Below, in pieces: positions 4,461-61,495 of a DNA stretch of 64,000 nucleotides. The first letter of the stretch is position 1; every line of letters begins with the position of its first letter. The translations under genes and the position numbers were made by a program. The stretch lies in IMG/VR virus record IMGVR_UViG_3300024239_000011, positions 434,001-498,000 of that record; one strand, given 5' to 3'. Under the pieces are notes generated by a model that did no database searches, was not told where the DNA came from, and was given only the letters and a program-made list of their open reading frames with translations.

Positions 4461-5450
4461 ATGCGCTCAAACAAATTCATAACCCCGGAAGTAATCGAGA
4501 TACCTCTTACTGCATCGTTTGGTACCATTTTGGTTGGACGCTATGCGTACTGGAATCCCCGCAAACAACACAGCTTCAAGCTTGGCGGGGTACAAGCAAC
4601 TCGGTTGATTGGGGAAGAAGTCGAAAAAGTAGCATCTCTATATCCGGGTTTTGACCGCGAAGATCGCTTTGTATGGCTCTCTAATCGCCCTGCTAAAACA
4701 GGCACCGCCTATAAAATCGATCTATCACGGCTCAATATTTTAGAATTGCGATCCCCCAAATGGACACCCGATGTCCTGTATCGAGGAAATATCCCGGCAA
4801 GCGCCATTGTTGGAACTATCCGCCCAGCGCCAATAACTGAATCCAAAGCAAACGACCACATAAAAGAAGTCGTCGGGATGATCCAGCGCGACTGCTCGGA
4901 TTTTCTTGGGGAATGGGACCATCAAACCCCACTTTTTATGGGTCTCCGTGGAGTAAAACCAAATCAACGTTTATTTCCTGACACTTCTCGTTTTATCTAT
5001 AGCTCAGTTGAACCACGAGAGCGCGGCGACGACATCACCGGTAAGCATTTTACCGCGATAATAGATGATGCGATGAAAAAAACCGGGTTTACGGCAACTC
5101 GGTTGAATTCTGTTCGGGTAACTGGCAACCTTGACTTAGCCCATATCGAAGGCGGGGTCTATGCGATCTTCCCGCTAAATGGGTATAATTTTTCATGGTC
5201 AACCATTGTTGGCGACTATGTACGGCATTTCGCGGACTCGCCCATATACCATGCCACCAGTTATCCCCGGACGAAATTCGGGCTGCAATTGAGGATCATG
5301 GATTACTGGAAGAGTATTGAAGGAAGCTACGCGACCACCGACATCAACGCAGCCATAGCGTCCGGTCATGAAATCCTGCTCGCAGGGTCCGGTTTCTATG
5401 GCATCCAGGCACACACGTTCGCTGAGATTGCCAAGAAGGGGCTTCTCTAA
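4461..5450 (+). CDS. Hypothetical two-domain protein, possible head-internal protein
   Basis: 329 aa ORF after a late motif; internal PITES protease-site-like linker; N domain weakly ART/KptA-like (FVWLS, YKIDLS, YRGNIP). Confidence 0.6.
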   Translation: MRSNKFITPEVIEIPLTASFGTILVGRYAYWNPRKQHSFKLGGVQATRLIGEEVEKVASLYPGFDREDRFVWLSNRPAKTGTAYKIDLSRLNILELRSPKWTPDVLYRGNIPASAIVGTIRPAPITESKANDHIKEVVGMIQRDCSDFLGEWDHQTPLFMGLRGVKPNQRLFPDTSRFIYSSVEPRERGDDITGKHFTAIIDDAMKKTGFTATRLNSVRVTGNLDLAHIEGGVYAIFPLNGYNFSWSTIVGDYVRHFADSPIYHATSYPRTKFGLQLRIMDYWKSIEGSYATTDINAAIASGHEILLAGSGFYGIQAHTFAEIAKKGLL

Positions 5451-6067
5451 GCGTTCTCGGAAATGCGGGGACTGTCCGGGTTCCAACTACCTGCATTGTA
5501 AACCGATTTGATGTTGCTTGGGTCAAATATCGCAACATTCATCTTTCCAACTTCGTTGGTCATGTACCCGTCGTACCCAAGGCGTTTCAACGCATTCTGG
5601 ATACGCGGTTGCTCTAATACCTTACAATTCCCTTTGGGAATGTATGTCTGGTACTCTTGAGCTTTCAACCGACCAACCATCGACCCATCGTTCATCACCC
5701 GGCGTATCGAAGGGTCACTAAAAAGTGCATTAAGGTCCGCTTCCTTGGACGGATCGAAAATACGCCCACGAAGATAGACCGGGTAGATAGCAGGCTGATT
5801 GCCCGATACGGCTTGACCGGCATAATTGGACGCATACTCAGGGTTCGTCGTGAAATAGATGGCAGGCGCTCGCTCTTTTTTCTTTAGCTCTTTACCGGTT
5901 CGAAACGCCGCAATGTCCTGCCCGGACCCGGTACCATGAAAGAATACTAGCGGTATGCCATGCTCATCCACCAGATTACTTTCACCAAACCACGCACGGA
6001 ATTTAGGGTCCGATAGGGGATTCCAATTTGCACGTTCGACTAGATTGATGAGGTGACGCATTTCCAT
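5447..6067 (-). CDS. ADP-ribosyltransferase-like protein (ART-PolyVal type)
   Basis: FRAWFGES.LVDE.G.PLVFFHGT, IYFTTNPEYASNYA, IYPVYL, GYDG, AIFDPSNIKS. TAAATA at 6073-6078. Confidence 0.75.
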   Translation of the reverse strand: MEMRHLINLVERANWNPLSDPKFRAWFGESNLVDEHGIPLVFFHGTGSGQDIAAFRTGKELKKKERAPAIYFTTNPEYASNYAGQAVSGNQPAIYPVYLRGRIFDPSKEADLNALFSDPSIRRVMNDGSMVGRLKAQEYQTYIPKGNCKVLEQPRIQNALKRLGYDGYMTNEVGKMNVAIFDPSNIKSVYNAGSWNPDSPRISENA

Positions 6068-6081
6068 GAAACTATTTAGCC

Positions 6082-6129
6082 GACAACAAGAACCCCCGCC
6101 AGTTCGCACCAGCGGGGGTTCTTGTTGTC
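6082..6129. terminator. Intrinsic terminator hairpin
   Basis: GACAACAAGAACCCCCGC...GCGGGGGTTCTTGTTGTC inverted repeat. Confidence 0.75.
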
Positions 6130-6192
6130 CCTTGGGAATGTGAAGGTGTCACCACCAACACCACGTTCACGTCCTACCCAAGGGCGCCCGTC

Positions 6193-6708: not shown

Positions 6709-6727
6709 ATGTTTCCTCATTAGAAAG

Positions 6728-6813: not shown

Positions 6814-8457
6814 TTATATCACATACTCTACAAGCCAACGTGTTTCATCACTAGTGCCTTCGTAGGTGAATACCTTATTCCCATCCCCGCTAATGGTAAT
6901 GAATAATGCATCATCATAAGTTGCGGTGTGTTCCCACCCACTACCAGTATTTGTAAACAAATACGAGACCGGATTTGTTGGCGAACTCGTGGCTGTATAA
7001 GATTGAGATACAACCAATTTTGTACCATCGTCACTTAATTTCACATTTACACCAAACCTAGCATCTTGTACGGGAAGTGGATGCTCAATAACAATAGGCG
7101 TGCCCCACGAATTCCACCCAGTCCCTTTTTGATAAATGTACACGGCGCCAGCACTTGTAATACCACCAACCGCAGTATTACCATCGCCGACTGCCAACAC
7201 CGACCCATCCGCTGAGCATGAAATAGATGAGGCAACACGACTAATCGTCCCAACAGGGGTAGAACCGCCACCTTGCTGATAAATTTTAATTTGCGATCCA
7301 ACCAATGCAAAGAGGTACGAAATACCACCTACAAACGCCGTATCCATGTTATATGATTGCGATGTCGTATCCAACTGGTTCCACCCACTAGATGAACCAG
7401 TTGTCGTAGTAAAGGTAAGACCACCATTACATGACCCAAAAACAAAACCATCATTTTGAGAATGAACAATTGCACGATGCACTTTGTTTTGATCGGCATT
7501 ATTTGGTTGGTATACAGAACCGTCACTAGTCCGAATAACTAGATAAGATTTGTACTCCCACGTATTCAAATTTTGATATGAATAGGCATATGCGCCTAAT
7601 TCATTTCCTAACGAAAAAGCACCCAAACTTAAGTTACCAGAACTAGAGGTATACCCACCAACAACATTTGGAGTTTCAACCCAACCCGCCGATTTAACCC
7701 AATATCGCAACGAACGATAACCATTTGCATCGCTCCCAAGCTCACGATTAAACATTATCGCAGTTCCGTTGCGATTTGTCTGAATACCTTTGCCATCCGG
7801 TCCATATGTCCATGCATTAAAATTACTTTTCACAAATGTTGCAACAATAGTCGATCCATTTGTTACATCAATAGTAAACGCCTGATCTGCACTGGCAGCC
7901 TTACTATCAGTGGCTCTAATCGTAAAATTAGCCAATCCTGGCGTTGTAGGTATACCAGATAATTCACCAGTTGCAACATTAAGAGTTATCCCTGCGGGCA
8001 AACTACCGGCAGACACACTATAAGTTATAGTATCTCCATTGGGATCGATGGCAGACAATGCATAGTTAAATGTTGATCCAACAATTACCGTTCCCAAACC
8101 ACCATTGGTAGTGGTCCAAATTGGTGCATCATTCACAATAGTTAATGAAAATGCACGATCATTTGAAAACACACCGTCACTGGCTCTAACTGTAAAATTG
8201 TATACCCCAGGATTGTTTGTTGGCGTCCCAGTGATTTGATTGCTGCTAAGAGACATTCCATTGGGAAGTATACCGGAAAAAATGCTATAAGAAACCAATC
8301 CATTCTCAGGATCAATTGCATTTAACGTATATGTAAAAGGAACATTTGCAGAAATAGTCCCTAAGGAACCTGATATTGTATTCCAAATAGGTGGTAGATT
8401 ACTGGCAACTTTAAATAATCCAGTTGGATTTAAATTTCCTTTAAACAATATACCCAT
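6814..8457 (-). CDS. Virion protein with two putative Ig (He_PIG) repeats and a beta-propeller-like C terminus
   Basis: Repeats PIW.T..G.LGT....F.Y.L.AIDP...YS...G.LP.G..L...G.P; GAVYIY and FGVNVKLSDDG FG-GAP-like motifs. AT-rich; TATAAATA at 8492-8499. Confidence 0.75.
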   Translation of the reverse strand: MGILFKGNLNPTGLFKVASNLPPIWNTISGSLGTISANVPFTYTLNAIDPENGLVSYSIFSGILPNGMSLSSNQITGTPTNNPGVYNFTVRASDGVFSNDRAFSLTIVNDAPIWTTTNGGLGTVIVGSTFNYALSAIDPNGDTITYSVSAGSLPAGITLNVATGELSGIPTTPGLANFTIRATDSKAASADQAFTIDVTNGSTIVATFVKSNFNAWTYGPDGKGIQTNRNGTAIMFNRELGSDANGYRSLRYWVKSAGWVETPNVVGGYTSSSGNLSLGAFSLGNELGAYAYSYQNLNTWEYKSYLVIRTSDGSVYQPNNADQNKVHRAIVHSQNDGFVFGSCNGGLTFTTTTGSSSGWNQLDTTSQSYNMDTAFVGGISYLFALVGSQIKIYQQGGGSTPVGTISRVASSISCSADGSVLAVGDGNTAVGGITSAGAVYIYQKGTGWNSWGTPIVIEHPLPVQDARFGVNVKLSDDGTKLVVSQSYTATSSPTNPVSYLFTNTGSGWEHTATYDDALFITISGDGNKVFTYEGTSDETRWLVEYVI

Positions 8458-8502: not shown

Positions 8503-9046
8503 GAACAACTTTAGGTTCTTGACCTAGATTGGAGGATCACCTTCCCCCTTTCGGAGGAAGAAGGTGATTGTTTTGACCTGAGTTGTCGGATTCATCAGAC
8601 GAGGAAATAGCAGTAGGCGGACTGGCGAGTTTCCTACCTTCCTCTTACCTTCCATGCCGAAATCGGCATCCAGTCGGGACCACGGGAGAACCCTGATGAT
8701 GATTCACCGTGGCTGCTCGTTGTGGTTAGTCACAGCGCGAGCATTCTTTCACCAACGCATAACGCGATCCTAAAAACGGAAATTATCGTTTCCATTTAAG
8801 CGTAAATTGACAAAGATAATGGGTATTGTATGTCAATGCGATTGGCTTACCATCAGCAGCACTGATGTGTCCTCTTTGTGGTCTGGCGGGCACCCTACTA
8901 GCCATCTGCGGCATTCGGATTTTTCCAGTCGAGCGAAGGGTGCGCTCTCATACCCCCGGTCAGTCGTCCCGGCAATTCTTGGGCGGTTTAATACAGAACC
9001 CTCTTAACGAGTCGGGACTGTATCCTTGACTACCTATACGAGTCAA
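8503..9046. ncRNA. Candidate large structured non-coding RNA (~540 nt)
   Basis: No credible ORF in a gene-dense genome; at least 12 tiled helices and a possible pseudoknot (see findings). Confidence 0.55.
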
Positions 9047-9047
9047 A

Positions 9048-9569
9048 TTACTTTCGTGCTTGTTTTGTTTCCTGTACCATTCCGGTAGGGATGCTTCCGC
9101 GTTTGATAAAGAAATCCAAGCGAGCGCCGGTTAGAGATGATGATTGATAATCAGACGAACCGGCACCGGTACGAATGTCAATGGTGATGGTCGTAAACGG
9201 CATTAATAGGACGCTATTGATTGCTCGCATCGCCTTGTGAGCATCGCGTTCTGACTTGGCTTCCAAGTTCAAGGCATGCTCGTTGTACTCGATGCGCACC
9301 CAGCCCAATTTGAGCAGTTCGAAGATTAGCTTATCGCTGTAGCCATTGAACGCGATGTCCGACACCACGTCGTCATCAACCACTTCTGGGTCGATGTCGA
9401 ACCGTTCGGCATTCTCCAACGCAAATTCTTGGTGTGATTTCTCGTCGTCTGACTTCCCAACGTAGGCAACGTCGTTGTCGTGGACGTTGAACCAATACTT
9501 CAGACCCCGACTTCCAAGAGCCGGTACGAAATCCATTAGACTTTCTGTAAGTATCTCATTAATGCGCAT
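9048..9569 (-). CDS. Hypothetical 'GWVR' family protein, putative head-internal
   Basis: MRINEILTE N terminus; paralogous to the N domain of 9608-10957. Confidence 0.75.
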   Translation of the reverse strand: MRINEILTESLMDFVPALGSRGLKYWFNVHDNDVAYVGKSDDEKSHQEFALENAERFDIDPEVVDDDVVSDIAFNGYSDKLIFELLKLGWVRIEYNEHALNLEAKSERDAHKAMRAINSVLLMPFTTITIDIRTGAGSSDYQSSSLTGARLDFFIKRGSIPTGMVQETKQARK

Positions 9570-9574: not shown

Positions 9575-9599
9575 TATTTAGTTTGTGGATAGCTAAATA
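9575..9599. promoter_or_regulatory. Back-to-back TAAATA late promoters
   Basis: TATTTA at 9575-9580 and TAAATA at 9594-9599, each 5-8 nt from a start codon. Confidence 0.65.
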
Positions 9600-9607: not shown

Positions 9608-10957
9608 ATGACCATACCCAGCCTTACCGACTATCTATGTGAGAACTCTTCGGAGCCGTTAACTGAACGGACGACTGAAATTCGTCTCTGGTACAACGTG
9701 AATACCGGGGAAGCGTTGGACACCAAGGGTAAAGATCATTTCGGGTTCGCGGCGGATAACGCCTCTTTGTTTGGTGTCGAGCATATTAATGTCGATGACG
9801 CAGACGTGGATGAAGACGGAGAAATGATCCCGCCTGACGACCGGTTGATGTCTACGGCATTTGCCAATGGCTGGGTCCGGATCAACATGAACGGTTGGGG
9901 TTTGCCCATCATCTGCACCGACCACCCCCGGAAGGCACAAAAGGCGCTCCGGTGGCTCGGGGATCGGCTTGAAGACCGGTCTGAGGTCATGATTGAACTC
10001 TACGCCGAAGGGCGGTGCCAATCGAAGACCTTGCGGGGCGAGGAAGTCTACCAGTTTGCCAAGGATGGGCGGCTATACGAAGCCGCTGCGCGGGGTCCAG
10101 AGGACTATTTCGCGGCAGGGGTGGTTGGTGATGCACGAGTCTGTGTAATCGAAGCCAGCGATCTCCGGACGCTGTGGGAGACATGTGTTCGCGCGGTTGA
10201 TCATGTGGATGAGGTTCGGTGGCACATTCCAGAGCGTGGGTTCGGAACTTTATTGGGTGATGAAATATCTCAATTCATCATGGTACCGGAGTTAGATATC
10301 CCCGCCACCCCATTCAAGTTACGTCGCTCCCTCAAGGAGAACGCGGGAAGCCCAGTAATTATTAATGCCATCAAGCAGTTGTTTGCTCAGTATATTGGGA
10401 CGACCAACCTCAATAATTTTTTTGGGAAACATCGCTGGGTAAATCTACCCGAAATGATGGGACGAAACGCAAAGGGCGGATCGACAGTGATTCGGCGGCA
10501 GCGTGTCGTTATGCAAGTTTCGCAGGAAGTTGTTGACTTCATTCATCGTTTCACTGGTCGAATTGAAGATACCGGGTGGTTTGTATCCGAAATTACCCCG
10601 AAGGATAATGGTTTCGACTTGGTACTAGATGCCACTCCTAACTTTGATGTTATGGGGACATTGTATCATCCAGTACCGTCAGAACAATTGGATGAAATCC
10701 GGCAGAGTGGTATTCAGCCTGAAGGTACCCCCGGTAAGATTTTATTGGGACGCACCCCTGCTGCTGCCCGCTTAATCGCTCTGCGCAAAGTCACACAGGG
10801 TGAATGGAGTGGTGATATCGCCATTATTGAGGTCAATACCAAGAAGGCGCACGTAAAGTTCTATCAGCACCCTGATTTTGCCAATTGTATGTTTGCGTAC
10901 CAGCCGATTTTTACCGGTGCCCTGCGCCATTCGCGAAAGAACGACTTGAAGCTATGA
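9608..10957 (+). CDS. Multidomain hypothetical protein (GWVR domain plus degenerate ART/KptA-like C domain)
   Basis: N domain aligns with 9048-9569; C terminus LYHPVP.E.LDEIRQSGIQP resembles the LYHGT...I...GL.P motif. Confidence 0.7.
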   Translation: MTIPSLTDYLCENSSEPLTERTTEIRLWYNVNTGEALDTKGKDHFGFAADNASLFGVEHINVDDADVDEDGEMIPPDDRLMSTAFANGWVRINMNGWGLPIICTDHPRKAQKALRWLGDRLEDRSEVMIELYAEGRCQSKTLRGEEVYQFAKDGRLYEAAARGPEDYFAAGVVGDARVCVIEASDLRTLWETCVRAVDHVDEVRWHIPERGFGTLLGDEISQFIMVPELDIPATPFKLRRSLKENAGSPVIINAIKQLFAQYIGTTNLNNFFGKHRWVNLPEMMGRNAKGGSTVIRRQRVVMQVSQEVVDFIHRFTGRIEDTGWFVSEITPKDNGFDLVLDATPNFDVMGTLYHPVPSEQLDEIRQSGIQPEGTPGKILLGRTPAAARLIALRKVTQGEWSGDIAIIEVNTKKAHVKFYQHPDFANCMFAYQPIFTGALRHSRKNDLKL

Positions 10958-11400
10958 CGTATCAAGTCCGGTACGGGCAATTACGTGCCCGTGATATTGT
11001 CAATCTACTGGAAATGACCCCCGCCGCCATTCAGCGTAAGGCGACTTTTTATAACAAGCTGGAACATTCAATTCTCCGTGAAGGATTTCGTAACCCCATA
11101 CTGGTGGTCGCTGGATACTGCCCGACCTTCTACGGGCATCGGTTGCCATCATCCATGCAGATGGATCGAACACAAATTTTGGTATGCTTTCGTCTTGGTG
11201 GCAGCCGTCTGTACGTTGCTCAGAAACATGACCTGATGGTTCCCTGTGTCATCAGCGATTTTGTTGGGCGGTTCCCCGATCTGGAACATCTACCTACCGT
11301 TGATGCGGTGGCGGACAAATTCAAAGAACGTCCGGATTGGATCAGGTTCCTCGGTGATGGCGTCTACACCGCTGAGTTACCCCATACTCACCTTTATTGA
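10954..11400 (+). CDS. ParB N-terminal-like protein
   Basis: LEHSILREGFRNPILV...GGSRLYVA; ATGA overlap with the upstream gene. Confidence 0.55.
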   Translation: MTYQVRYGQLRARDIVNLLEMTPAAIQRKATFYNKLEHSILREGFRNPILVVAGYCPTFYGHRLPSSMQMDRTQILVCFRLGGSRLYVAQKHDLMVPCVISDFVGRFPDLEHLPTVDAVADKFKERPDWIRFLGDGVYTAELPHTHLY

Positions 11401-11439: not shown

Positions 11440-12399
11440 ATGCGAGGTTACATTATGGGCGGTGCTGCTTTCCCATCAATTGATGGATTGTCGCGGATTT
11501 TTCGCGAGCATCTTGAACCTACATTGCACTACGTCGCAGATGCTTTGGCTATCAAGGGTCTGACCTACGAGTATGTCCATGCGAATCTTGTAGGCAGCGT
11601 TGGGAAACAGCCGTCAAGTGGGGATATTGATATTGCCGTTGATGCCCGATTGTTTCCGCGCGATGTGCTGAGTGAAATTTACAAACACTCTCTGGCGCGC
11701 AACGGCGCGGGAACCGTCATTTTTCGTAACGAGGACGTGGATCATCTGGTGATGACGGCTTGGCCGATTGTCGTGGATTATTACGGCGGCGTCCCGGTGT
11801 TCCTTCATGGTAAGGATGGGCATGAACTATACGTTCAGGTTGATTTCTCCTACGGAAACGCGGATTGGTTGAAATATTCACATTGGTCGCCTGGAAAATA
11901 TCACAGTGCATATCCTGGCGTCATGATCCAGACCTTGATGATGCTGCTGGTCAAGATGAACAAAGAGTTCGTCTGGACGGACGAGCATGGTTTGCTGGCG
12001 GATGTCGGGTTGATCGTGGACGTGAACCGGGGTATGTATCGCCTGTGGCGGCTTCGCAAACGTACCGGGGATGAACCGAGCCGCGTTGATCCCGATTTCT
12101 GGGAGAGTAATTTCCGTCCGGATGGGAGGGAACCGCCGCGTTTCGCGCGTATTGGCTATATTAACGATCCTACGGAAGTCGTGCGCCTGACGTTGGGCGC
12201 GGGGGTGACGCCTGCGGATATCGACACTTTCGAGAAGCTGTGGGCGATTGTGGTTGACCGCAGCGCCAAGGGCGAGTTGCCGCCCGTCGCACAGATCAAG
12301 AGTCGGATGCTCGAAAGCCTAATCAAGCTTCCCATGAAAACGGAGTTCACCCGTGATCAGATGGAAAGCTTCCCGGTCTGGGCGGACGTTAAGGTGTAG
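11440..12399 (+). CDS. Pol-beta-type nucleotidyltransferase domain protein
   Basis: GSVGKQPSSGDIDIAVD and YVQVDF motifs; likely start MGGAAF. Confidence 0.7.
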   Translation: MRGYIMGGAAFPSIDGLSRIFREHLEPTLHYVADALAIKGLTYEYVHANLVGSVGKQPSSGDIDIAVDARLFPRDVLSEIYKHSLARNGAGTVIFRNEDVDHLVMTAWPIVVDYYGGVPVFLHGKDGHELYVQVDFSYGNADWLKYSHWSPGKYHSAYPGVMIQTLMMLLVKMNKEFVWTDEHGLLADVGLIVDVNRGMYRLWRLRKRTGDEPSRVDPDFWESNFRPDGREPPRFARIGYINDPTEVVRLTLGAGVTPADIDTFEKLWAIVVDRSAKGELPPVAQIKSRMLESLIKLPMKTEFTRDQMESFPVWADVKV

Positions 12400-13381
12400 G
12401 GCGGCTCTGGGCGAGGTGTACCATGCGTTGGTATACCCGCTTCAGATACTCTTTCCATGCCTGCTTGGTATCCACCCAGTTGTTCTGGCGAATGTGCTGA
12501 TAATAGCTATGTAGCTTATCGTCGGCAGGACTGGTCCCGTGTTTGAGGATTGACGCTAGGTGCGTTTTGGCTGCGCCGAAGTCCCAATTGTTCTTGTGCA
12601 GAAGGTCCAATGCCGCATTGTTGGCATGGGCATCTACTTCGACTTTCTTGGTCAGGTAGTCGGCATTCAAGAGCGCCGGGTCATAATGCTCATCAGGGTG
12701 TCCCATTTCATCTCGATCATTGGGAAGTCCCCAGGTTTCGTCTTCTTTGGATAGGTATCGATCATCGCTCGTCGTCGCAGACAGGGCATCGGGCCACTTT
12801 TCGGCTTTTTCTTCCGGGGTCATGGACATAAGTTGATCCCATTCAATGCCACGGCGGGACATAAAAATGTCTGCTTTTCTGGTCCACTTCAGATTGGCAC
12901 GTTTCATGCGCTTCGACTGGTGTAGATGAACCAGTTCGTGTGCCATGGTCCGCGCAATTTCGTGACAATAGCGGGCAATCATTGCTTCCCGTTCCGCCTG
13001 CTTCATTTTATATGGGACAAAATCCTTCACATCATCAGGGGACCATGCAGCCGGGATATCGAGTTTGAACATATGGCGGTTGCCACCCGATAAAAGAGTG
13101 TGTTTGCCACTGGGACGGTCAATGTCTTTTTTGGTGGATACGTTGAAGAAGACCGTTTGGAAAGCGGGATCGTGTGATATCCCGAATTCGGTCTTGAGGA
13201 TGTACCCCAAGGTACCGTCTATGCGCCCCCGAAGACGATCAAGGAAGTATCCTCGAAAATCATCTGGCTCGTGCTGGACATGCTTCAACGTGTCTTCATA
13301 GGCGTGTTGAGCATCTTTCTTGAACCAGTGGTACGGGTTCGAGATATCGATACGTTCGTTGAGAAGTTCTTGAAGTTTCAT
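12389..13381 (-). CDS. HExxH zincin-like protein, putative head-internal
   Basis: MKLQELLNE N terminus; AHELVHLHQ...YLTKKVEVDAHA. Confidence 0.7.
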   Translation of the reverse strand: MKLQELLNERIDISNPYHWFKKDAQHAYEDTLKHVQHEPDDFRGYFLDRLRGRIDGTLGYILKTEFGISHDPAFQTVFFNVSTKKDIDRPSGKHTLLSGGNRHMFKLDIPAAWSPDDVKDFVPYKMKQAEREAMIARYCHEIARTMAHELVHLHQSKRMKRANLKWTRKADIFMSRRGIEWDQLMSMTPEEKAEKWPDALSATTSDDRYLSKEDETWGLPNDRDEMGHPDEHYDPALLNADYLTKKVEVDAHANNAALDLLHKNNWDFGAAKTHLASILKHGTSPADDKLHSYYQHIRQNNWVDTKQAWKEYLKRVYQRMVHLAQSRPTP

Positions 13382-13411
13382 CCATACACCAGCTTGTTGC
13401 TGGTGTATTTA

Positions 13412-16700: not shown

Positions 16701-18242
16701 TTAATCGTGACCCGCTTCGTAGCGATGCACCATTTGGTCGTCGGCGTCCCGGCTGTCCAAAACGACTTTGTATCCCCACAGGCGGCTTATATGCTTGAGA
16801 ACTTCCTGGGTGTTCTGTTCATCCAGTGGAATGTCGTCACACATGCGATGATGCAGAACTAGAGTACGGCTACCGCGTAGATTGGCAGCCATCACCTGAA
16901 TGTCGGGTTCCAGGCGCGACACGTTGTATTGGCGCGAGAAAGCCCGACGAATATCTCGAAAACCACTGCCATTGTGGATATGGGTAACATCATATTCATC
17001 TGCATCCTCATCGTCATGCACAAGAAACAACTTCCGCTTCCGCATGACGGTGGGTGAAAGATATTGGAGGATGAAACTTTCGTCGCGATAGTTGGTAACC
17101 GCATCCAGCAGTACCGCCCGCCAATCCAGATTGCCCGCAAAATCAAACCATTCACGGTCTTCATCGGTGGGATTTTCACAGATGCGCTTGATGTCCTGCA
17201 TCATGTCGAAGCCAATGGCATACGGGTTGAAGCCACCATAGCGCGGATCATCGAAATCGGGCTGGAAGACCACGTTGGTGTGGCTCTGGGTGAATTCCAT
17301 CCAGGCACCATCGGTGATCATGCCCTTGTCCCAGAGACGGTTCATGATGTAGTGGTGGACAAAGGTAGCGAAACCTTCATTCATCACCTTGGTCTGTTTT
17401 TGCGGGTAGAAATACTGGCTGATCTTGCGGACAATGCGGATGATCTCGCGCTGCCATGCTTTCAGGGTCGGGCTGTTCTTCTCAAGGAAGTACAGGATGT
17501 TCTCTTCCGGCAGCCGGGCACGCCCACGCAGAGTGTCAGATTCGTCTTTCTCGTCCGCCGTGTCAGCAACCGGACCTTGCGGCACGGTGCGCCACAGATC
17601 GTTGAACGACCGCTCTTCGTATTCCTGCTGCGCCTTGACCCGCTCGCGCTCGCGTTCTGCGCTCAGCTTCTCGGGGCGATGATAGCGATCAACGCCGTGT
17701 GACATCAGGGCGTGGGCAGAATCCAGCAGGGCTTCCACTTCATCAAACCCATACCGTTGTTCGCAGTGGTTGATGTAGTCCTTCGCAAATGCAAGGTAGT
17801 CGAGGATGCCATCAGCATCCGTCCACTGCTTGAACAGATAGTTGTTGGCAAAGAAGTGGTTGTGCCCGAACGCAGCGTGTGCCATCACCAGAGCTTGCAT
17901 GGTCATCGTGTTCTCTTCCATGCAGTAGCTAATGCATGGATTCGAGTTGATCACGATTTCATAAGCAAGACCTTGACGCCCCTTGCGGTAATTCGTCTCG
18001 TCTCTGGCAAAATGCTTGCCAAATGACCAGTGCTGGTACATCAGGGGCATGCCGATGGACGAATAAGCGTCCAACATTTGCTCGGCGCTGATGATCTCGA
18101 TCTGATTTCGATACGGTTTCAGCCCGAGATCATTGATGGCGATGTCTTCGATGGCGTCGTAAGTGCGTTTAAGGGTGTCAAAATCCCATTCAGCACCTTC
18201 AAACAGCGGCTTGACCAACTTACCACGAGGCTTCCGCGCCAT
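16701..18242 (-). CDS. spoVR: SpoVR family protein (YcgB)
   Basis: HWSFGK, GLAYEIVINSNPC, AHAAFGHNHFF, YFYPQKQTKVMNEG. Confidence 0.95.
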   Translation of the reverse strand: MARKPRGKLVKPLFEGAEWDFDTLKRTYDAIEDIAINDLGLKPYRNQIEIISAEQMLDAYSSIGMPLMYQHWSFGKHFARDETNYRKGRQGLAYEIVINSNPCISYCMEENTMTMQALVMAHAAFGHNHFFANNYLFKQWTDADGILDYLAFAKDYINHCEQRYGFDEVEALLDSAHALMSHGVDRYHRPEKLSAERERERVKAQQEYEERSFNDLWRTVPQGPVADTADEKDESDTLRGRARLPEENILYFLEKNSPTLKAWQREIIRIVRKISQYFYPQKQTKVMNEGFATFVHHYIMNRLWDKGMITDGAWMEFTQSHTNVVFQPDFDDPRYGGFNPYAIGFDMMQDIKRICENPTDEDREWFDFAGNLDWRAVLLDAVTNYRDESFILQYLSPTVMRKRKLFLVHDDEDADEYDVTHIHNGSGFRDIRRAFSRQYNVSRLEPDIQVMAANLRGSRTLVLHHRMCDDIPLDEQNTQEVLKHISRLWGYKVVLDSRDADDQMVHRYEAGHD

Positions 18243-18321: not shown

Positions 18322-19609
18322 TTATGCTTCCTTTTTAAATAGTTCCCGGAAGACAGGGAAAATTTGGTTTGCTGCTCGAATCTTGCGCATTTGGAATTTA
18401 TCCCACCGATCATTAATCGGCTTGTAGGTACGCCATAGATCGGTTTCGCTATTTCCCCAATTTTTGTATTCGTGACCCACTTCAATGAAGGCGTAATACT
18501 GGACGATTGGTAGAATTTTTTCGTTGAGCAAATTTTGGCAGTACGTATTGTCCGACGACACGTTATCGCCATCCGACGCTTGCGCGGCGTAGATGTTCCA
18601 CTGATCCAGGGGATACCGCTCGCGGATGACTTTATCCATCAATTCCAGCGAGGTGGATACCACGGTGCCGCCAGTTTCGGTGTCGTAGAAGAAGGTTTCT
18701 TCATCGACCTCCTTTGCTTCATGGGTGTGACGAATAAACACCACGTCGATACGCTGATACTGACGACGTAGGAAAAGATAGAGCAACATGAAGAACCGCT
18801 TCGCGAGGTCTTTCATGTGTTCGGTCATCGATCCCGATACGTCCATCAGACAGAACATCACCGCTTGTGTTGCCGGGAGGGGATGCTTGACATGAAGGTT
18901 GTACCGCACGTCCACCGGGTCCACAAATGGTACCGATTTCATACGACGCCGAATCGTTTGAACTTCCAAATGGAGTTCAGTCAACCGGTCGGTTTCTTCG
19001 GTAGTGCGCGGAGTTTTGGTTTCCAAGCGGAAGATTTCCGCCTCCAATTCCTTCAATTCTGCCGTCTTCGGACGGCGCAATGCAATCCGGCGACCAACCG
19101 CATTACGCATGGTCTGACGAATGTTCAAATTGCTTGGATTGCCTACGGTTGTGTAGCCACCACGTCGATACTCATATGAGATTGACTGCCGCAATTGCTT
19201 CTTGACCATATCGGGCAGTTCCAAATCCTCAAAGAAAATATCGAGGAATTCGCTGCTGTTAAGCACAAACTGAAAGTCATCCTGCCCTTCGCCGTCCGGG
19301 GAACCTTCGTTCCCTTGACCACCGCCCCGGCGGGATTTGGGGATAGTGTCGCCGGGGACATATTCCTTGTTGCCAGGAACGACGCGATCATGCCGACCAC
19401 CTTCGCCATGGACAATATGCGGCTCGCGGATGCCCTTGCTGGGGATGACAATTTTCCCCTTGGTATTGGCGATATCCTTGATATCGGTTTCGCCAATATG
19501 TTTCTTCACGGCTTCCTTGATTTGCTCTTTCGCCCGGCGAATGAAACGCTGCCGATTAACAAGGCTTTTGCCCTGCGGGTTTTTGCGGCGGTCGATAATG
19601 TCCAGCATA
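18322..19609 (-). CDS. yeaH: YeaH/YhbH (DUF444) vWA-like protein
   Basis: IIDRRKNPQGKSLVNRQRF, PGNKEY, AVMFCLMDVSGSM, ETGGTVVS, QASDGDN. Confidence 0.95.
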
Positions 19610-19891
19610 TCAAATGATCCCAATCCCAATTGTGATGGTTTTGATACCGTCGTTCTTAGCGCGGCACTGAAATTCTGCGACCAGACCACCGCGTTCTTCT
19701 CGAACAAATACCGTGTAATTGGAAATTTTGCGTTTCCACTTCAACATTTCACCCACTCGTGAAAGTCCTGCCTCAACCCCCGCCACCATTGCTAGTGATG
19801 GGGGATCGAAGCTAAAAGGCTCGACTTCTGCCCGAATTGCTTCGGTTAGGTCGAGTTCACCGATGGTGGTGGCACCGGAGAACGAGATCAC
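19610..19891 (-). CDS. Hypothetical protein
   Basis: 93 aa ORF filling the gap between the endonuclease and yeaH. Confidence 0.5.
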   Translation of the reverse strand: MISFSGATTIGELDLTEAIRAEVEPFSFDPPSLAMVAGVEAGLSRVGEMLKWKRKISNYTVFVREERGGLVAEFQCRAKNDGIKTITIGIGII

Positions 19892-20749: not shown

Positions 20750-22693
20750 TCAACCCGCCCGACGAACGCGCATGTACCATTCCACGAGACGGCGCACTTG
20801 GCGTTCGGTGTAGCCCTGCTCCACCATCCGGTTAAGGAAGTCGTGGTGTTTCTTCTCGGTGTCCTTGTCCTTCTTGGCACCGAACGAGATCACCGGCAGC
20901 AAATCTTCGGTGGCGCTGAACATGCGCTTTTCGATGACTTCCTTCATTTTCTCGTAGGAAGTCCACTTGGGCATTTTCCCGGCGTTGTTCGCTTTGTTGC
21001 AAAGCACCCACTGGACGATTTCCTGACGGAAATCCTTGGGATTGGCGATGCCGCACGACTTCTCGATTTTCGACAGTTCAGTGTCGAGAACCGTCATGCT
21101 GAACATCTGACCGGTATCCGGGTCTTTATAATCCACGCCCTGACACCACGCATCCGCATAAGACACGTAACGCTCGAAGATGTTCTGACCGTATTCTGAA
21201 TAGCTGTCCAGATAAGCTTTCTGAAGGGTCTTTTCCAGATGCTCGGCATACTTGGGCGCCAGGAACTCCTTGATGAATTCAATGAGTTGCTGTTCTTTTT
21301 CCTCCGGGAACTGCTCGCGTTTGATTTCCTGTTCCAGCACATACATCAGATGCACGGGATCAGCCGCAACTTCGTTCGGGTCGAAGTTGAAGACTTTGGA
21401 CAGGATTTTGAACGCGAAGCGGGTGGAGATGCCCTCCATACCCTCGTTGACGCCCGCGACATCACGATACTCTTGCATCGTCTTTGCCTTGGGGTCAACG
21501 TCCTTCAGACCTTCGCCGTTGTAGACGCGCATTTTTGAGAACAAGTTCGAGTTCTCGTGCTCCTTCAGACGCGACAGCACGCTGAATTGAGCCAGGATAT
21601 CGAGGGTTTGCGGAGCGCACGGCGATTTTCCGAGGCTACCACCATCCAGCATTTTGCGATAGATGTCCACTTCCTCGTCATAGCGCAGGCAATAGGGTAC
21701 CTTGATGACGCAGATACGGTCCAAGAACGCTTCGTTGTTCTTGTTATTGCGGAAAGTTTGCCACTCGGATTCGTTCGAGTGGGCGAGAATGATACCGTTG
21801 AACGGGATCGCGCCCAGTGACTCGGTACCGATGTAGTTGCCTTCCTGCGTGGCGGTCAGCAGCGGATGCAGCACCTTGATGGGCGCCTTGAACATTTCCA
21901 CGAATTCCATCACGCCCTGGTTTGCACGGCACAGAGCGCCGCTGAACGAGTAGCAGTCCGGGTCATTCTGGCTGTAGTGTTCCAGCTTGCGGATGTCCAC
22001 CTTGCCAACTAGGGCGGAAATGTCCTGATTGTTCTCGTCGCCCGGTTCGGTTTTGCAGATCGCAACCTGCTTAAGACGGCTCGGGATCATCTTGACGACT
22101 TTGAATTTGGAATAGTCGCCACCGACTTCCCCCAGCCGCTTGACTGCCCATGGGGAGGTCAGACCGGTGATGTAGCGGGTCGGAATGTTGTATTCCGCTT
22201 CAATTTCGTCTGCCAACGCCACCGGGAATAGGTTCAGGGGCGATTCGAAAACCGGTGACAGTTCGGAACGTTTACCGTCATCGAATTTCAGCACGTAGAT
22301 CGGGTGCTTTTCCATCAGCGCCTTCAGGCGCTCAGCCAGCGAGGACTTACCACCGCCGACCGGACCAAGCAGGTAGAGAACCTGCTTGCGTTCTTCAAGA
22401 CCCTGCGCGGCGTGGCGGAAATAACCAACGATGCGTTCCACGGTTTCTTCCATACCGAAGAAATCCGCAAAAGCCGGATACCGCTTAATCGTGCGATTCA
22501 TGAAGATACGCGACAAACGCGGATCGGTGCTGGTATCAATAACTTCCGGTTCACCAATTGCCTTAACCATGCGTTCTGACGCAGAGGCATACATCAACGG
22601 GTCGGAGGCGCACTGTTGAAGGTATTCCTCCAAAGACATTTCCTCTTCGTGATCCCGTTGGAATGTCGCCTGGAACTTACTCAAAATCGACAT
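20750..22693 (-). CDS. prkA: PrkA/YeaG family AAA+ serine kinase
   Basis: LLGPVGGGKSSLAE, EPGDENNQDIS, FVEMFKAPIKVLHPLLTATQE, AHSNESEW. Confidence 0.96.
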   Translation of the reverse strand: MSILSKFQATFQRDHEEEMSLEEYLQQCASDPLMYASASERMVKAIGEPEVIDTSTDPRLSRIFMNRTIKRYPAFADFFGMEETVERIVGYFRHAAQGLEERKQVLYLLGPVGGGKSSLAERLKALMEKHPIYVLKFDDGKRSELSPVFESPLNLFPVALADEIEAEYNIPTRYITGLTSPWAVKRLGEVGGDYSKFKVVKMIPSRLKQVAICKTEPGDENNQDISALVGKVDIRKLEHYSQNDPDCYSFSGALCRANQGVMEFVEMFKAPIKVLHPLLTATQEGNYIGTESLGAIPFNGIILAHSNESEWQTFRNNKNNEAFLDRICVIKVPYCLRYDEEVDIYRKMLDGGSLGKSPCAPQTLDILAQFSVLSRLKEHENSNLFSKMRVYNGEGLKDVDPKAKTMQEYRDVAGVNEGMEGISTRFAFKILSKVFNFDPNEVAADPVHLMYVLEQEIKREQFPEEKEQQLIEFIKEFLAPKYAEHLEKTLQKAYLDSYSEYGQNIFERYVSYADAWCQGVDYKDPDTGQMFSMTVLDTELSKIEKSCGIANPKDFRQEIVQWVLCNKANNAGKMPKWTSYEKMKEVIEKRMFSATEDLLPVISFGAKKDKDTEKKHHDFLNRMVEQGYTERQVRRLVEWYMRVRRAG

Positions 22694-24416: not shown

Positions 24417-24458
24417 TAATACCTCGCTACGACACGAGGTATTTAGGTAGCCACGAAC

Positions 24459-32379: not shown

Positions 32380-33383
32380 AGATAGTAATTTGCACAGATG
32401 CCTCCCGTCCACAGATCAACGGGGTCGTAACTACTCTGGAACATACAAAAACAGAGCTTGAAAACCTTGGTCATGAAGTCATTATGATCGAGCCATCGTT
32501 ATTCGCAACGATACCTTGTCCAAGTTATTCGGAAATTCGCTTAGCGTATAATGCTTTTTGGCATCTACCCCGCCTTATAAATGAAATTGACCCGGATTCC
32601 ATACATATAGCAACGGAAGGTCCGATTGGCGCTGCGGCGCGGTTATACTGTGCGTTAAAACAGATACCATATTCAACATCTTACCATACAAAATTTCCAG
32701 AATATGTTCGCAAACGTTGGCCGATACCGTTATGGGTTACGTATGGTTACCTTCGCTTGATACACGGCAGCGCCAAGGCAATATTGGTTACGACTGGATC
32801 AATGGCTACCGAATTACATGAGCGTGGATTTAAAAACCTAGTCGTATGGTCTAGAGGCGTGGATTCGGATTTGTTTTCACCATCGCGTGCGACTGATCTC
32901 GGGTTGCCACGCCCAATTCATCTGTCGGTAGGGCGTATATCAATAGAGAAAGGTTTGGATGATTTTCTCGCCCTACAAATACCCGGCACCAAATTGGTAG
33001 TTGGGGATGGTCCACAATTGAAGGATATGAAGAGCCGATATCCTGATGCGATTTTTGTAGGAGCAAAGCGTGGAACCGATCTGGCGACATATTACGCCTC
33101 TGCTGACGTTTTTGTATTTCCGAGTAAGACCGACACATTTGGGGTGGTAATGCTTGAAGCAATGGCGTCCGGTACCCCCGTCGCGGCTTATCCGGTTACC
33201 GGACCAAAAGATGTGATCACCAATGGGAGCGGTAAGCTGGATACCGATCTCAAAAGGGCAATTGAACATTGTTATACGATTGACCGGCGTCAATGCGCTG
33301 AGTTGGGGCGCACATTCACCTGGGAGTCATGCGCCCGCACTTTCCTCAATTCATTGGCGATCATCCCCAAATTTACGCGCTAA
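32376..33383 (+). CDS. GT4 glycosyltransferase, Agt-like
   Basis: TDA..PQINGVV.TL, HIATEGPIG, SYHTKFPEY, FPSKTDTFGVVMLEAMASGTPVAAYPV. Confidence 0.88.
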   Translation: MKIVICTDASRPQINGVVTTLEHTKTELENLGHEVIMIEPSLFATIPCPSYSEIRLAYNAFWHLPRLINEIDPDSIHIATEGPIGAAARLYCALKQIPYSTSYHTKFPEYVRKRWPIPLWVTYGYLRLIHGSAKAILVTTGSMATELHERGFKNLVVWSRGVDSDLFSPSRATDLGLPRPIHLSVGRISIEKGLDDFLALQIPGTKLVVGDGPQLKDMKSRYPDAIFVGAKRGTDLATYYASADVFVFPSKTDTFGVVMLEAMASGTPVAAYPVTGPKDVITNGSGKLDTDLKRAIEHCYTIDRRQCAELGRTFTWESCARTFLNSLAIIPKFTR

Positions 33384-33411
33384 ATAGAAAAACCGATGTT
33401 ATTTGGAGTAG

Positions 33412-33909
33412 GTGATGAGGTTGATTGAGGTGCTGGAAGAGAGCGCAACCGATAGCCTTCAGCGCAGAATTGCAAGTCTCGAAGCCATTATGAACGATCC
33501 TGCTGCAACAGCCGGGGAACGGGAGAATGCTCGTCTCTTGAAGGACAATTTGGAGCGGAAACGCGCATCAAGCATACCTACGGTGGAAACCGTTCTTATT
33601 CAAGTCCTTCAGAACATGAACGCTTATTGCGAACCGCCTTATTACGGGGCGCAACTTTGGGGTTTGAACTGGATACGTTTCATCGAATTTCTAACATCTG
33701 CGTTGCGTCCGTACTGCACCATCGTTGGGCGTAGTCCAACAAGTGGCGACTATTCCATCAGTATGGACTACTCCCGGCGTATAATCACAATTAGTTATAA
33801 CAGCAGTTATATGAAAGTCGCCAGCCCCCAACATTTCATTGGGAAGTTGCTATTTGCAGACCTAAAGCCAATCGTTGAACGGATGGTCGCGACGAGTAGA
33901 GCCGCTTAA
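33412..33909 (+). CDS. Hypothetical protein, putative head-internal
   Basis: MRLIEVLEE N terminus; DPAATAGERENA; TAAATA at 33381-33386. Confidence 0.65.
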   Translation: MMRLIEVLEESATDSLQRRIASLEAIMNDPAATAGERENARLLKDNLERKRASSIPTVETVLIQVLQNMNAYCEPPYYGAQLWGLNWIRFIEFLTSALRPYCTIVGRSPTSGDYSISMDYSRRIITISYNSSYMKVASPQHFIGKLLFADLKPIVERMVATSRAA

Positions 33910-59108: not shown

Positions 59109-59119
59109 GTATTCACCAC

Positions 59120-60916
59120 TTAACAGAAGTTGTGCCGGATAAAGCCGTAAAGGTATTTACCGTCGCAATGAAACTCGATAACGTCGGTTGCGTTCGGTAC
59201 AGTAGTCAGACGTGGTTTCCCGCCGGGGAACTTAATCATGTCTGCAAATTTGATGTCGTGACCACCAACATCGTCTTGATGGATGAAGAGGACATAGGTG
59301 TGACCCGCCACGCACCCATCCACCGACAGTTCGATAGGTTTGTCCAAGAAAAGGGTCATGGTCCGCGAGCGATTCATCAACCAAACCGTTTTTGCATCAC
59401 ACGGAAGTTCACCATGTGAGACGGTCATTACTTCGTTCCAGCCGGTTACCTCGCAGACTTCAAAGCTGGTCGTCTCTTCGTTGTAGCGAATCAGCCCGGT
59501 TTCATGCTCGCCTCGGTCATAGGTTCGGCCACATGGAACTTTCAAACCGCGCCGCCCACCAACACGTAGATTGGACGCCAGAGAAATGACCGGATTACCA
59601 AGGGCACCGTCTCCATTTACTATGTCGATTTGATCTGGTTGACCAACCAGGGTACGACCAACCAGATTATCACCCACCTTGATCATCACCCCACCGAGGA
59701 CACCCGTAACCTTATCAACTACGGCACCGTCTTGCTTCAGGTCGCGCCCATCAATCACTCCACCATCTGGGAATACGATACTGCCACGGATGTACAGATC
59801 GCCTTTGATTGCATCACCCGTTTTGGTAATGAAACGGTCGTCCGCCTCTGACTTGGTGTAGTGGTTCGGAAGCTGGGTCTGAATGATTGCGTTCGACAAA
59901 CCCTTGACCACGCCAGAACCGCGCACGTCGCCCTGGAAGGTTAGTTTGAAATCGGAGGCACCGATCTCTGGGTTCCCATCGAAACCGTCTCCATGGCGTA
60001 CCGTAATACCACTGACACCCTTAATTTCACGCGGGGCAGTCTCGGTACCGGGACGACGTTGAACCACGAAGCCTGCGGCGTTGCCCAAGGTGGAACGCAA
60101 ATATCGAGTATCATTGTAATCGCGGTCGCCAATATGAGTACCATAGATGGGTTCCTTGACGCCCTTCAGGTAATTACCATTGAGATCAAGGGTTCCCATC
60201 ATCTTCCCACCGGTCGTGGAAAGCACTTCATTGGTGTCAAGACGGAGGTTCAGAACTATGTCCTCAAGGTTTTTAACCTTCACCGAGCCTTTGACATCGC
60301 CCCGCACCACCAGATTGAAGCCCTTAATACCCACGGTCGGCGGACCCTGTACACCGTCATGATTTAGGACGCGCAAGCCATCAATGGCTTCAAGATGACG
60401 CCCAGTGAATACGCCATCTGCTTGCCGCACCAGAATACCACTTTTGGTATTTATGCGGTCTAGCAGCAGTCCATCCTTGGTTAAATCACGACCAGCAACC
60501 GTGAAACCGTCATCAACATGAATGTTGGCGTTCTTCATGACCAGATCACCTGTCATGGTATCGCCGGTTTGGTTGACGTAGGTGTTTGAGCCATCTTCGA
60601 CTGAAACAATACGTCCTTTTATATCCACTGTGATTTTAGCTGCATCGTATGTACCGGCAACAACACCGGTTTCTGTCAGGCACAACTTGATTTTGAGGGG
60701 GTCGCTGCCTTCAGCAATGTATGAGGAAACGCCAACAACATCACCCTCTACCTTGATGAACTTGTTCTGGATGCGACTAATTTCATCTGCCGCCTGTCCT
60801 AGATTATCTGCGATAGAGGCAAAGTTGTCCCGAAAACCCTGTGTTGAATTTGCCTGCTTGGCCTTCGGAAAGTCTTTGTCAATGCCGGTAATGTCTATTT
60901 TTGACCCAAATGCCAT
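59120..60916 (-). CDS. Tail fibre protein
   Basis: FP...Q.N..QGFRDNF, GV.AGTY...TVD.KGR, GD.M.GDL and NGDG..GNP repeats, L.I.QD..GG. Confidence 0.8.
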   Translation of the reverse strand: MAFGSKIDITGIDKDFPKAKQANSTQGFRDNFASIADNLGQAADEISRIQNKFIKVEGDVVGVSSYIAEGSDPLKIKLCLTETGVVAGTYDAAKITVDIKGRIVSVEDGSNTYVNQTGDTMTGDLVMKNANIHVDDGFTVAGRDLTKDGLLLDRINTKSGILVRQADGVFTGRHLEAIDGLRVLNHDGVQGPPTVGIKGFNLVVRGDVKGSVKVKNLEDIVLNLRLDTNEVLSTTGGKMMGTLDLNGNYLKGVKEPIYGTHIGDRDYNDTRYLRSTLGNAAGFVVQRRPGTETAPREIKGVSGITVRHGDGFDGNPEIGASDFKLTFQGDVRGSGVVKGLSNAIIQTQLPNHYTKSEADDRFITKTGDAIKGDLYIRGSIVFPDGGVIDGRDLKQDGAVVDKVTGVLGGVMIKVGDNLVGRTLVGQPDQIDIVNGDGALGNPVISLASNLRVGGRRGLKVPCGRTYDRGEHETGLIRYNEETTSFEVCEVTGWNEVMTVSHGELPCDAKTVWLMNRSRTMTLFLDKPIELSVDGCVAGHTYVLFIHQDDVGGHDIKFADMIKFPGGKPRLTTVPNATDVIEFHCDGKYLYGFIRHNFC

Positions 60917-60976
60917 ATTCCCGCCCTCGTGCTGTTCTGAATATTTATCCAGAGAGAGGGTTGCCTAAATACTGGC

Positions 60977-61495
60977 ATGAAGATGATCGAGCTATTCGAG
61001 TATACAGTTGATGGTTTCGTGATCCAAAATAGCGCGAGCATGATCACACCGGCTGGTGAAGTCATACCGTGTGATTTCGCTGGGCACAGTGATACCGTGG
61101 TACATTGGATGGAAGTTAATGATCCAGACACTCTAGCACAGTGGATCAACGATGGGATTGTTGGCTGGACTGCCGTTAATGGGCACAAAACTGTAAGTGA
61201 TGAGCAAAAAGTGATGGAAGCAGCCATTCTACATGGGTGGGTACGGTATTACTTTAGCGGCAAGGTCAATGATTGGGACGAATTTATTCTTCGTTATGTC
61301 AGAAATGCTCGTTATCTGGTAGGTTTTACATGTTCCCCCTCCCACCTCAATGGGAATACTGCTACTGCTTGCTTTCGATTATTAACAAATTTGCAGAAGA
61401 TGCAGCCGATTGCAGTGGAATTGGGCGGATATACAGAGTCGTCATATTCGGTGGTACCGTACCGGAAGGCGGTGGAATTCTTCCGATCAATATGA
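60977..61495 (+). CDS. Hypothetical 'GWVR' family protein, putative head-internal
   Basis: MKMIELFE; ITPAGE...H...AILHGWVR; TAAATA shortly before the ATG. Confidence 0.7.
   Translation: MKMIELFEYTVDGFVIQNSASMITPAGEVIPCDFAGHSDTVVHWMEVNDPDTLAQWINDGIVGWTAVNGHKTVSDEQKVMEAAILHGWVRYYFSGKVNDWDEFILRYVRNARYLVGFTCSPSHLNGNTATACFRLLTNLQKMQPIAVELGGYTESSYSVVPYRKAVEFFRSI

Follow-up and report, generated by a model that had tools for sequence, protein, structure and literature searches.

Six genes dispersed over a 64,000-nucleotide stretch of viral DNA, bases 434,001 to 498,000 of the IMG/VR record IMGVR_UViG_3300024239_000011 (this whole stretch is referred to here as the window), open with variants of one short N-terminal tag, M-(K/R)-Phi-x-E-Phi-Phi-x-E, where Phi is a hydrophobic residue. 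The tag is best read as a head-targeting or processing leader of the phage T4 type, a reading to which we assign a probability of about 0.68. Across the genome, 15 to 35 otherwise unrelated late genes would be marked by it, probably as genes for head-loaded proteins and possibly for proteins injected with the DNA. The T4 capsid targeting sequence (CTS) and the T-even internal proteins (IPs) are known, whereas novelty seems to lie in the scale, in the cargo and in a leaderless cassette of promoter and tag. A preliminary description of this DNA had quoted the six N-termini, and all of them translated as claimed at 9569 (-), 13381 (-), 24416 (-), 33415 (+), 60977 (+) and near 6067 (-). The last of these, MRHLINLVE, belongs to an open reading frame (ORF) ending at 5447, for which the likely start is the ATG at 6067, giving MEMRHLINLVE. 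The TAAATA motif that the same description had placed before all six genes was also found upstream of each on its own strand, at 11, 11, 30, 29, 34 and 11 nt before the ATG when taken in order of position and counted from the first base of the motif.

The window belongs to a 543,035-bp record (GC 0.49) rated as complete by CheckV. The DNA runs containing this genome were subsurface metagenomes; the only RNA run with a match, from wastewater and kept as contigs, gave a 7% share, and none of these runs is suited to mapping transcript starts. The major capsid protein of this phage is of the T4 gp23 type (PF07068, 270 bits; 36% identity to T4 gp23 over the main aligned block), and the nearest isolates by capsid protein were Sinorhizobium phage Phosso (81%), Agrobacterium phage Atu_ph07 (69%), Pseudomonas phage PA5oct (69%) and the Rak2/GAP32 group (67%), which therefore places the phage in the huge-genome branch of the T4 superfamily. 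The genome also encodes, at 208647-209276, a gp21-type prohead protease (PF03420, Peptidase_S77, 82.7 bits), in which His77 and Ser130/131, the serines of GVSSRG, were invariant with T4 gp21 in an alignment, and genome positions 205994-210338 form an operon of core protein, prohead protease, scaffold-like protein and capsid protein. The capsid protein carries PILE/NATVG (slashes mark known or predicted cleavage points) and that of PA5oct carries FLVE/NASAG at the matching N-terminal place. The block after PILE/NATVG aligns to T4 gp23 from residue 78, 12 residues past the T4 FLTE/A site, and these observations are consistent with the same protease specificity. A search of the genome found no separate gp24 homolog.

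When 8 kb of window sequence was compared with the phage collection by megablast, no match was returned. The huge phage LR756502, found via its PrkA gene, was set aside as a relative because the link was a shared accessory gene; it contained only one match to the tag pattern. An ENA contig (L071, k141_178484, 869,618 bp) carries identical copies of window proteins in the same gene neighborhood. It is far longer than the 543-kb record and may be a concatemer, a misassembly or a larger genome.

Recurrence of the tag and its match to T4 leaders

The genome-wide N-terminal motif search suggested in the preliminary description was run on a rough gene call of 669 genes, with a strict motif, M[KR][LIMV]x[EQD][LIV][LFI]xE, and a looser core, M[KR][ILVM]x[EDQ][ILVF]. 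The strict motif opened 13 genes, compared with 0.025 expected from a shuffle of the N-terminal columns, which never yielded more than one. A six-frame scan restricted to ORFs of 60 aa or more likewise gave 13 occurrences, each no more than 38 codons past the preceding stop, and a degenerate DNA form of the tag gave 15 matches in the genome and 0 for the reversed control. The looser core was found at 35 of the 669 N-termini compared with 5 of 2770 internal methionines. The tag set is thus real and far beyond chance, and the count of six had underestimated it, with about 15 strict and about 35 loose bearers genome-wide. Codons within the tags varied (CGG, CGT, CGC or AGG for Arg, and AAA or AAG for Lys), and it is therefore the peptide that is conserved and not the DNA. 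Once the first 12 residues had been trimmed, most tagged proteins were mutually unrelated by blastp, the exceptions being the paralogs with ADP-ribosyltransferase (ART) domains and one pair with a GWVR motif.

Some tagged genes stand in a row. Three consecutive ones form an operon at genome 56553-58563(+), with the starts MKIREILRE, MRIQEILTE and MKIQEILQE; three others do so at genome 39564-41791(-), with MRIIEITGAR, MRIDEIINAP and MRIDEIDIGG; and PA5oct has a similar tagged trio, EST35_0382-0380.

The T4 leaders with which the tag was compared, taken from NC_000866, are those of IPII/IPIII (MKTYQEFIAE/A), gp24 (MAKINELLRE/S), gp22 (MLKEQLIAE), gp21 (MNEPQLLIE) and gp67 (MEGLIE), and the window start MRINEILTE/S is nearly the same as the gp24 propeptide. 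In T4, the first 10 residues of IPIII are enough for packaging. Within the CTS, residues 4 and 7 are the main determinants of targeting and residues 8 and 10 those of processing, and Asp at position 10 stops cleavage but not targeting (PMC9026906). The conserved tag positions 3, 6, 7 and 9 correspond to T4 CTS positions 4, 7, 8 and 10 with a shift of one residue. A packaged, processed and injected ADP-ribosyltransferase is also known from T4, namely Alt (PMC9026906), and it serves as the direct precedent for the tagged ART proteins described below.

Late-type promoters, relatives and cargo

TAAATA was found 8-70 nt upstream of 130 of the 669 genes, compared with 46 for its reverse complement, with a peak at 25-40 nt. 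The aligned sites showed no -35 element, a consensus of G(A/C)TAAATA(C) and a purine in 76% of cases at the sixth base past the motif. The layout is that of the T4 late promoter, TATAAATA, from which transcription starts about six bases downstream. TAAATA heads the core-protease-scaffold-capsid operon and, through the copy at 60942-60947 (-), the tail-fibre/baseplate operon of the window. Within 70 nt, the element preceded 28 of the 35 tagged genes versus 106 of the 634 other genes (odds ratio 20, p = 5e-15). By gene order, six of the seven remaining tagged genes directly follow a TAAATA-headed gene on the same strand, and the last is a doubtful 79-aa ORF. The preliminary description had regarded an equal frequency of the motif in early genes as fatal to its proposal; the tag is instead tied to TAAATA and, on this evidence, is not as frequent in early genes.

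A spacing of exactly five bases between TAAATA and ATG occurred before 25 ORFs genome-wide, compared with 3 for four bases and 1 for six. With this spacing, transcription is predicted to begin at the A of the start codon itself, which would make these late mRNAs leaderless, and the window genes at 6067(-), 9569(-) and 60977(+), with others checked in this group, have no Shine-Dalgarno (SD) sequence. The apparent absence of a leader from three of the six window genes had been overlooked previously. Tag-like starts were found in 13 of the 29 ORFs with four to six bases between TAAATA and ATG, including these three, and 16 of the 29 were untagged. Leaders of 24-34 nt, in most cases with a match resembling an SD, were present in about 20 tagged genes. 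A narrow literature search found no description of such a leaderless promoter-tag arrangement.

The same arrangement was searched for in IMG/VR as TAAATA-N5-ATG fused to the strict tag, with the pattern read backwards as control. It was found in at least 119 contigs, compared with 3 for the control. Among the matches listed (121), 116 headed ORFs of at least 60 aa, which fell into 50 unrelated clusters, and 13 loci had T4-type gp18, gp20, gp21 or gp23 within 5 kb.

Individual relatives also retain the tag. The contig of P0011, a 66%-identical ortholog of the HExxH protein P0002 of the window, has four tag-like starts with TAAATA among its 22 genes, and P0011 itself begins MKLNEILNE and keeps HExxH. 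A homolog (38% identity) of a 514-aa tagged protein, on an unrelated low-GC contig (L167), starts MRVYEFLIE. On an unrelated 82-kb viral contig (L078), an ART-PolyVal gene at 8811-9539 and an adjacent gene at 9611-11302 (563 aa) share an identical 12-residue start, MTDIRRFMNLVE, with (A/G)ATAAATATCGC immediately before each ATG; this contig also has the starts MRDLINLVE and MRDFMRLIE, of the same flavor as the window gene at 6067.

Virion data were available for PA5oct, in which 93 of the 461 proteins constitute the virion proteome (PMC7318152) and are flagged in the GenBank record as 'structural protein, ESI-MS/MS' (electrospray ionization tandem mass spectrometry). Six of its nine core-motif starts carry this flag, compared with 93 of 461 overall (Fisher p = 0.003), namely EST35_0150, 0205, 0230, 0238, 0380 and 0381. 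One of these virion proteins is encoded by a small gene right after the portal gene, in the gp67 slot. The strict DNA pattern was found only once or twice each in Phosso, Atu_ph07, PA5oct and GAP32, and homologs of the tagged proteins of this phage were not found in Phosso; the large tag set is therefore lineage-specific, with fast turnover. T-even Ip genes are hypervariable, with comparable turnover (PMC12373910).

As to what the tag precedes, all six ART-PolyVal matches in the genome were tag-bearing, four above the cut-off of 31.2 and two below. The weakest, at genome 243479, starts MRYQELFE, the same variant as in P0005. The two ART-like calls of the preliminary description, P0003 and P0006, were borne out by Pfam ART-PolyVal scores of 63 and 65 bits; by eye, both hold the His (VYHGT), the Tyr/Phe (YF[ST]) and a late Glu. 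The match in P0003 begins at about residue 14-31, which leaves the tag outside the domain. In a library of 1.8 billion proteins, 118 of the 149 best relatives of the window ART domain were at least 1000 aa long (median 2002 aa), with the match starting from about residue 14. Such polyvalent proteins have been proposed to enter the host with the DNA (PMC5512222, PMC7824862). Further tagged proteins include a GNAT-ART fusion, a Glucosaminidase, an Amidoligase_2, a weak GNAT match, an SspB-like protein and the HExxH protein, and most of the others had no known family.

Proposed mechanism and alternative explanations

Altogether, these observations suggest the following sequence of events. Tagged genes would be transcribed late from TAAATA promoters, and the tag would draw each newly made protein into the core on which the prohead is assembled. 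Cleavage by the gp21-type protease would follow, after the Glu of a Phi-x-E site, most likely Glu9, and would leave the mature protein within the head. The enzymatic cargo at least, namely the six ART-PolyVal-type proteins (one a GNAT-ART), the glucosaminidase, the amidoligase-like protein and the HExxH protein, would be ejected with the DNA and act on the host as the next infection begins, as T4 Alt and IPI-III do. We infer the binding to the core, the site of cleavage, the packaging by this phage, the ejection and the host role. Injection of the enzymatic bearers, which draws on the analogy with T4, appears to us an evenly balanced question, and a counter-defense or takeover role would follow from the T4 Alt/IP analogy and the domain content. 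The T4-style capsid targeting sequence cut after (I/L)xE, as put forward in the preliminary description, thus gains from the leader match, the gp21/gp23 machinery, the tie to TAAATA, the conservation in the orthologs at 66% and 38% identity and the enrichment in PA5oct virions, with packaging and cleavage here as predicted steps.

A broader proposal is more tentative, and we would sooner doubt it than accept it. The roughly 45-bp cassette of TAAATA, five bases, a leaderless ATG and the nine-codon tag might be a T4-superfamily-wide device by which acquired genes are made head-packaged and co-injected; in this phage, together with SD-led copies, it might load about 30 proteins, an 'unbundled polyvalent protein' arsenal that includes every ART.

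Several points weigh against a packaging leader. Three PA5oct tag-bearers, EST35_0075, 0271 and 0382, were undetected in the virion, all of them small (64-128 aa). Some of the listed IMG/VR bearers were ligase-like or HAD nucleotidase-like by motif reading, which would be unexpected in a head and calls for caution, as not every bearer need be an injected effector. The tag contains two overlapping Phi-x-E sites (residues 3-5 and 7-9), and about 20 members of the loose set lack Glu9, so that the cut site is uncertain. Thirty-five packaged species would be many, and false positives are probably present in the loose set, the SspB-like gene being an example. A genome search and phmmer found no homolog of T4 gp55, and 'late' is consequently judged from the promoter shape and the operons that carry TAAATA; a PF04542 search gave only an ordinary sigma70-family factor at genome 223099-223887(+), with regions 2 and 4, which is not equated with gp55. 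Predictions of a complex between the protease and the tagged ART protein P0003 gave a median score of 0.01 and, in one run, 0.42, which speaks neither way on binding. Additionally, the phage is uncultured and known here from its sequence alone.

The alternative that survives best accepts the tag as a true gp21-type propeptide and holds that most bearers are prohead core or scaffold accessories that are degraded, expelled or kept in the head and not injected. T4 gp22, gp67, gp68, gp21 and gp24, which are core or shell proteins, have similar N-termini (PMC9026906); the tag is found on the small gp67-slot protein by the portal or protease genes in PA5oct and in several IMG/VR contigs, and many of the listed IMG/VR bearers are proteins of 67-80 aa. 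Among the bearers in this phage, however, are proteins of 150-514 aa (ART, GNAT-ART, glucosaminidase, amidoligase-like, HExxH) whose only plausible substrates are in the host cell, T4 Alt and the IPs carry the same signal on injected proteins, and the tagged set is not conserved in the nearest relative as assembly genes would be. We therefore regard accessory status for most bearers as unlikely.

The conserved start could also be an effect on translation, in that late mRNAs whose 5' end lies at or close to the AUG, leaderless ones above all, would favor certain codons or peptides. The 13 tag-like starts among 29 TAAATA-N4-6-ATG ORFs, and the three window genes with neither leader nor SD, are what this would predict, but it is the amino acids that are conserved while the codons vary, leaders of 24-34 nt, mostly SD-like, precede about 20 tagged genes, and the 16 other leaderless ORFs are untagged. 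Moreover, in T4 the leaders that follow this pattern are preceded by an SD and have been shown to target and be cleaved (PMC9026906), and the PA5oct bearers are enriched in virions, which leaves such an effect a slim chance. Similarly slight is the likelihood of a non-capsid N-terminal signal, either a degron or adaptor-recognition tag or a membrane- or pole-targeting helix. A short amphipathic, acidic-hydrophobic N-terminus would suit that role, and the genome has an SspB-like adaptor and other proteostasis genes; against it stand the near-identity to T4 leaders of known function, the co-occurrence with gp21/gp23-type head genes here and in IMG/VR contigs, and the PA5oct virion enrichment. 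Chance, or descent from one paralogous family, for which the paralogous ART genes and the P0001 paralog at genome 534400 (E 0.001) might be cited, is refuted by 13 occurrences against 0.025 expected, by the dissimilarity of most pairs past the tag and by the 50 unrelated clusters among the listed IMG/VR bearers, and its probability is negligible.

The T4-type leader reading would matter for several reasons. Injected phage proteins act before phage gene expression and are thus prime candidates for counter-defense, and outside the T-even phages they are hard to recognize by sequence. If the reading is correct, a simple sequence rule would become available for listing which proteins uncultured T4-related and huge phages inject, and its strictest, leaderless form is already matched in at least 119 IMG/VR contigs; polyvalent effector domains (ART, GNAT and others) would be linked to a second delivery route; and a short targeting tag would be suggested for loading foreign proteins into very large capsids. 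The apparently leaderless late mRNAs are a separate, testable point on T4-type late transcription and translation.

The window genes and comparison with known systems

The coordinates of the six tagged genes and their promoter elements are listed in Table 1.

Table 1. Tagged genes of the window and the TAAATA elements that precede them
Feature	Position in window	Strand	Remarks
ART-PolyVal gene P0006	5447..6067	-	longer tag flavor MEMRHLINLVE/R; Pfam PF18760, 65 bits; no SD; looks leaderless
TAAATA late-type -10 element	6073..6078	-	ATG 5 nt downstream; terminator-like hairpin just upstream
P0001, 173 aa, function unknown, contains GWVR	9048..9569	-	tag MRINEILTE/S; TAAATA-N5-ATG; looks leaderless
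TAAATA element	9575..9580	-	5 nt before ATG 9569
HExxH protein P0002, 330 aa, possible zincin	12389..13381	-	tag MKLQELLNE/R
TAAATA element	13406..13411	-	30 nt before ATG 13381
Stand-alone ART-PolyVal P0003, 158 aa	23940..24416	-	tag MRLSEILLE/D; 63 bits
TAAATA element	24440..24445	-	29 nt before ATG 24416; preceded by T-run terminator-like site
P0004, 164 aa, function unknown	33415..33909	+	tag MRLIEVLEE/S; no Pfam match
TAAATA element	33381..33386	+	34 nt before ATG 33415; inside 3' end of GT4 glycosyltransferase gene
P0005, 172 aa, function unknown	60977..61495	+	8-residue tag variant MKMIELFE/Y; TAAATA-N5-ATG; looks leaderless
TAAATA element	60966..60971	+	5 nt before ATG 60977; divergent from TAAATA 60942-60947 (-)

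Of the remaining domain calls in the preliminary description, that of an HExxH zincin in P0002 stood in part, as the motif (HELVH) is present and conserved in the 66%-identical ortholog and a zincin fold is no more than possible. No match to P0002 was found in Pfam or among PDB sequences, and no relatives in the IMG/VR related-locus search. Its neighbors in the Atlas were weak (M48, SprT-like, IrrE and LPD23, with template modeling scores of 0.27-0.56 for M48, SprT-like and IrrE), and an AlphaFold model from a two-sequence alignment was poor (predicted local distance difference test 51), with strands followed by a long helix over HExxH. Two genes had also been grouped by GWVR; P0001 and P0005 share only this short motif (BLASTP E 1.4, not significant), and GWVR as a family marker across P0001, P0005 and P0004 was rejected on sequence comparison. 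For P0001 no relatives were found in Pfam or the Atlas, its paralog outside the window having been mentioned above.

A GC-rich, terminator-like hairpin lies at about 6080-6125(-), directly before the TAAATA of the first ART gene, and a GC-rich stretch that ends in a T-run lies at about 24446-24470(-), directly before that of the second. Each of these sites makes up, with the promoter and the tag that follow it, a compact unit that recalls the mobile regulatory cassettes found in T4-type phages.

Several neighboring genes were also recognized. A complete prkA/yeaG - yeaH (DUF444) - spoVR/ycgB triad occupies 16701-18242(-), 18322-19707(-) and 20750-22723(-), as indicated by Pfam scores of 550 and 560 bits and, for PrkA, by tblastn and the Pfam annotation of the L071 copy. 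Copies of this PrkA kinase in uncultured huge phages of roughly 640 kb, and in a 30.8-kb record titled Enterobacter phage LAU1, share 59-65% identity with it; for the copy in Ralstonia phage RsoM2USA the figure is 54%. Between PrkA and the tagged ART gene lies an Apyc1-like anti-Pycsar gene of the metallo-beta-lactamase fold at 22893-23786(+) (PF23023, 82.9 bits, cut-off 50), which has neither TAAATA nor tag. A DUF932 protein is encoded at 25590-26684(-), and a GT4 glycosyltransferase, with a sub-threshold 'GT4-conflict' match, at 32376-33383(+), directly upstream of the tagged gene at 33415. A 547-aa He_PIG/Ig-domain protein at 6814-8457(-) has two TAAATA sites upstream. Replication genes, namely a Dda-like helicase at 41812-42972(-) and a gp44-type clamp-loader subunit at 43628-44638(-), are interleaved with late and tagged genes in the window.

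Amongst known systems, the closest is the T4 CTS with the T-even Ip family (Mullaney and Black 1996 and Repoila et al. 1994, cited in PMC9026906 and PMC12373910). As there, a leader of about 10 residues, M-K-x-Phi-x-E-Phi-Phi-x-E, ending in (I/L)-x-E, stands on unrelated, non-essential, hypervariable late proteins, a gp21-type protease is encoded, and one cargo class is an ADP-ribosyltransferase, as is Alt. Unlike in T4, the leader has nine residues and not ten, the bearers number about 15-35 and not 4-5, and the phage, at 543 kb, is known here only as sequence. The T4 IPs are small GmrSD inhibitors, whereas the named cargo here consists mostly of larger enzyme domains, and many bearers look leaderless. 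The closest match to the tag itself is the T4 gp24 propeptide, MAKINELLRE/S, and gp21 removes gp24 N-terminal propeptides according to a review; gp24 is a shell protein, however, and the tag here stands on accessory proteins.

With the polyvalent proteins of phages and conjugative elements (Iyer et al. 2017, PMC5512222; PMC7824862), the set shares ART-PolyVal, GNAT and an LPD-like/zincin-like neighbor, as well as the proposed co-delivery with DNA. In those proteins the domains are beads on one giant polypeptide, whereas here they are separate small proteins, each with its own tag and promoter, 'unbundled' and with another loading route. The ejection proteins of phiKZ and SPN3US (PMC5694885) are likewise head-internal and are cut after Glu by a gp21-related protease, but their propeptides are 80-130 residues long with an A/S/G-x-E motif and the phages themselves lie outside the gp23 lineage, whereas the tag here is short and T4-like. 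Finally, the mobile regulatory cassettes (PeSLs) of T4-type genomes are likewise short, conserved units of terminator and promoter next to variable genes, through which modules could be shuffled; PeSLs are described as lacking a coding part (PMC2839356, PMC4122927), whereas the unit in this phage combines a late-type promoter with a coding tag.

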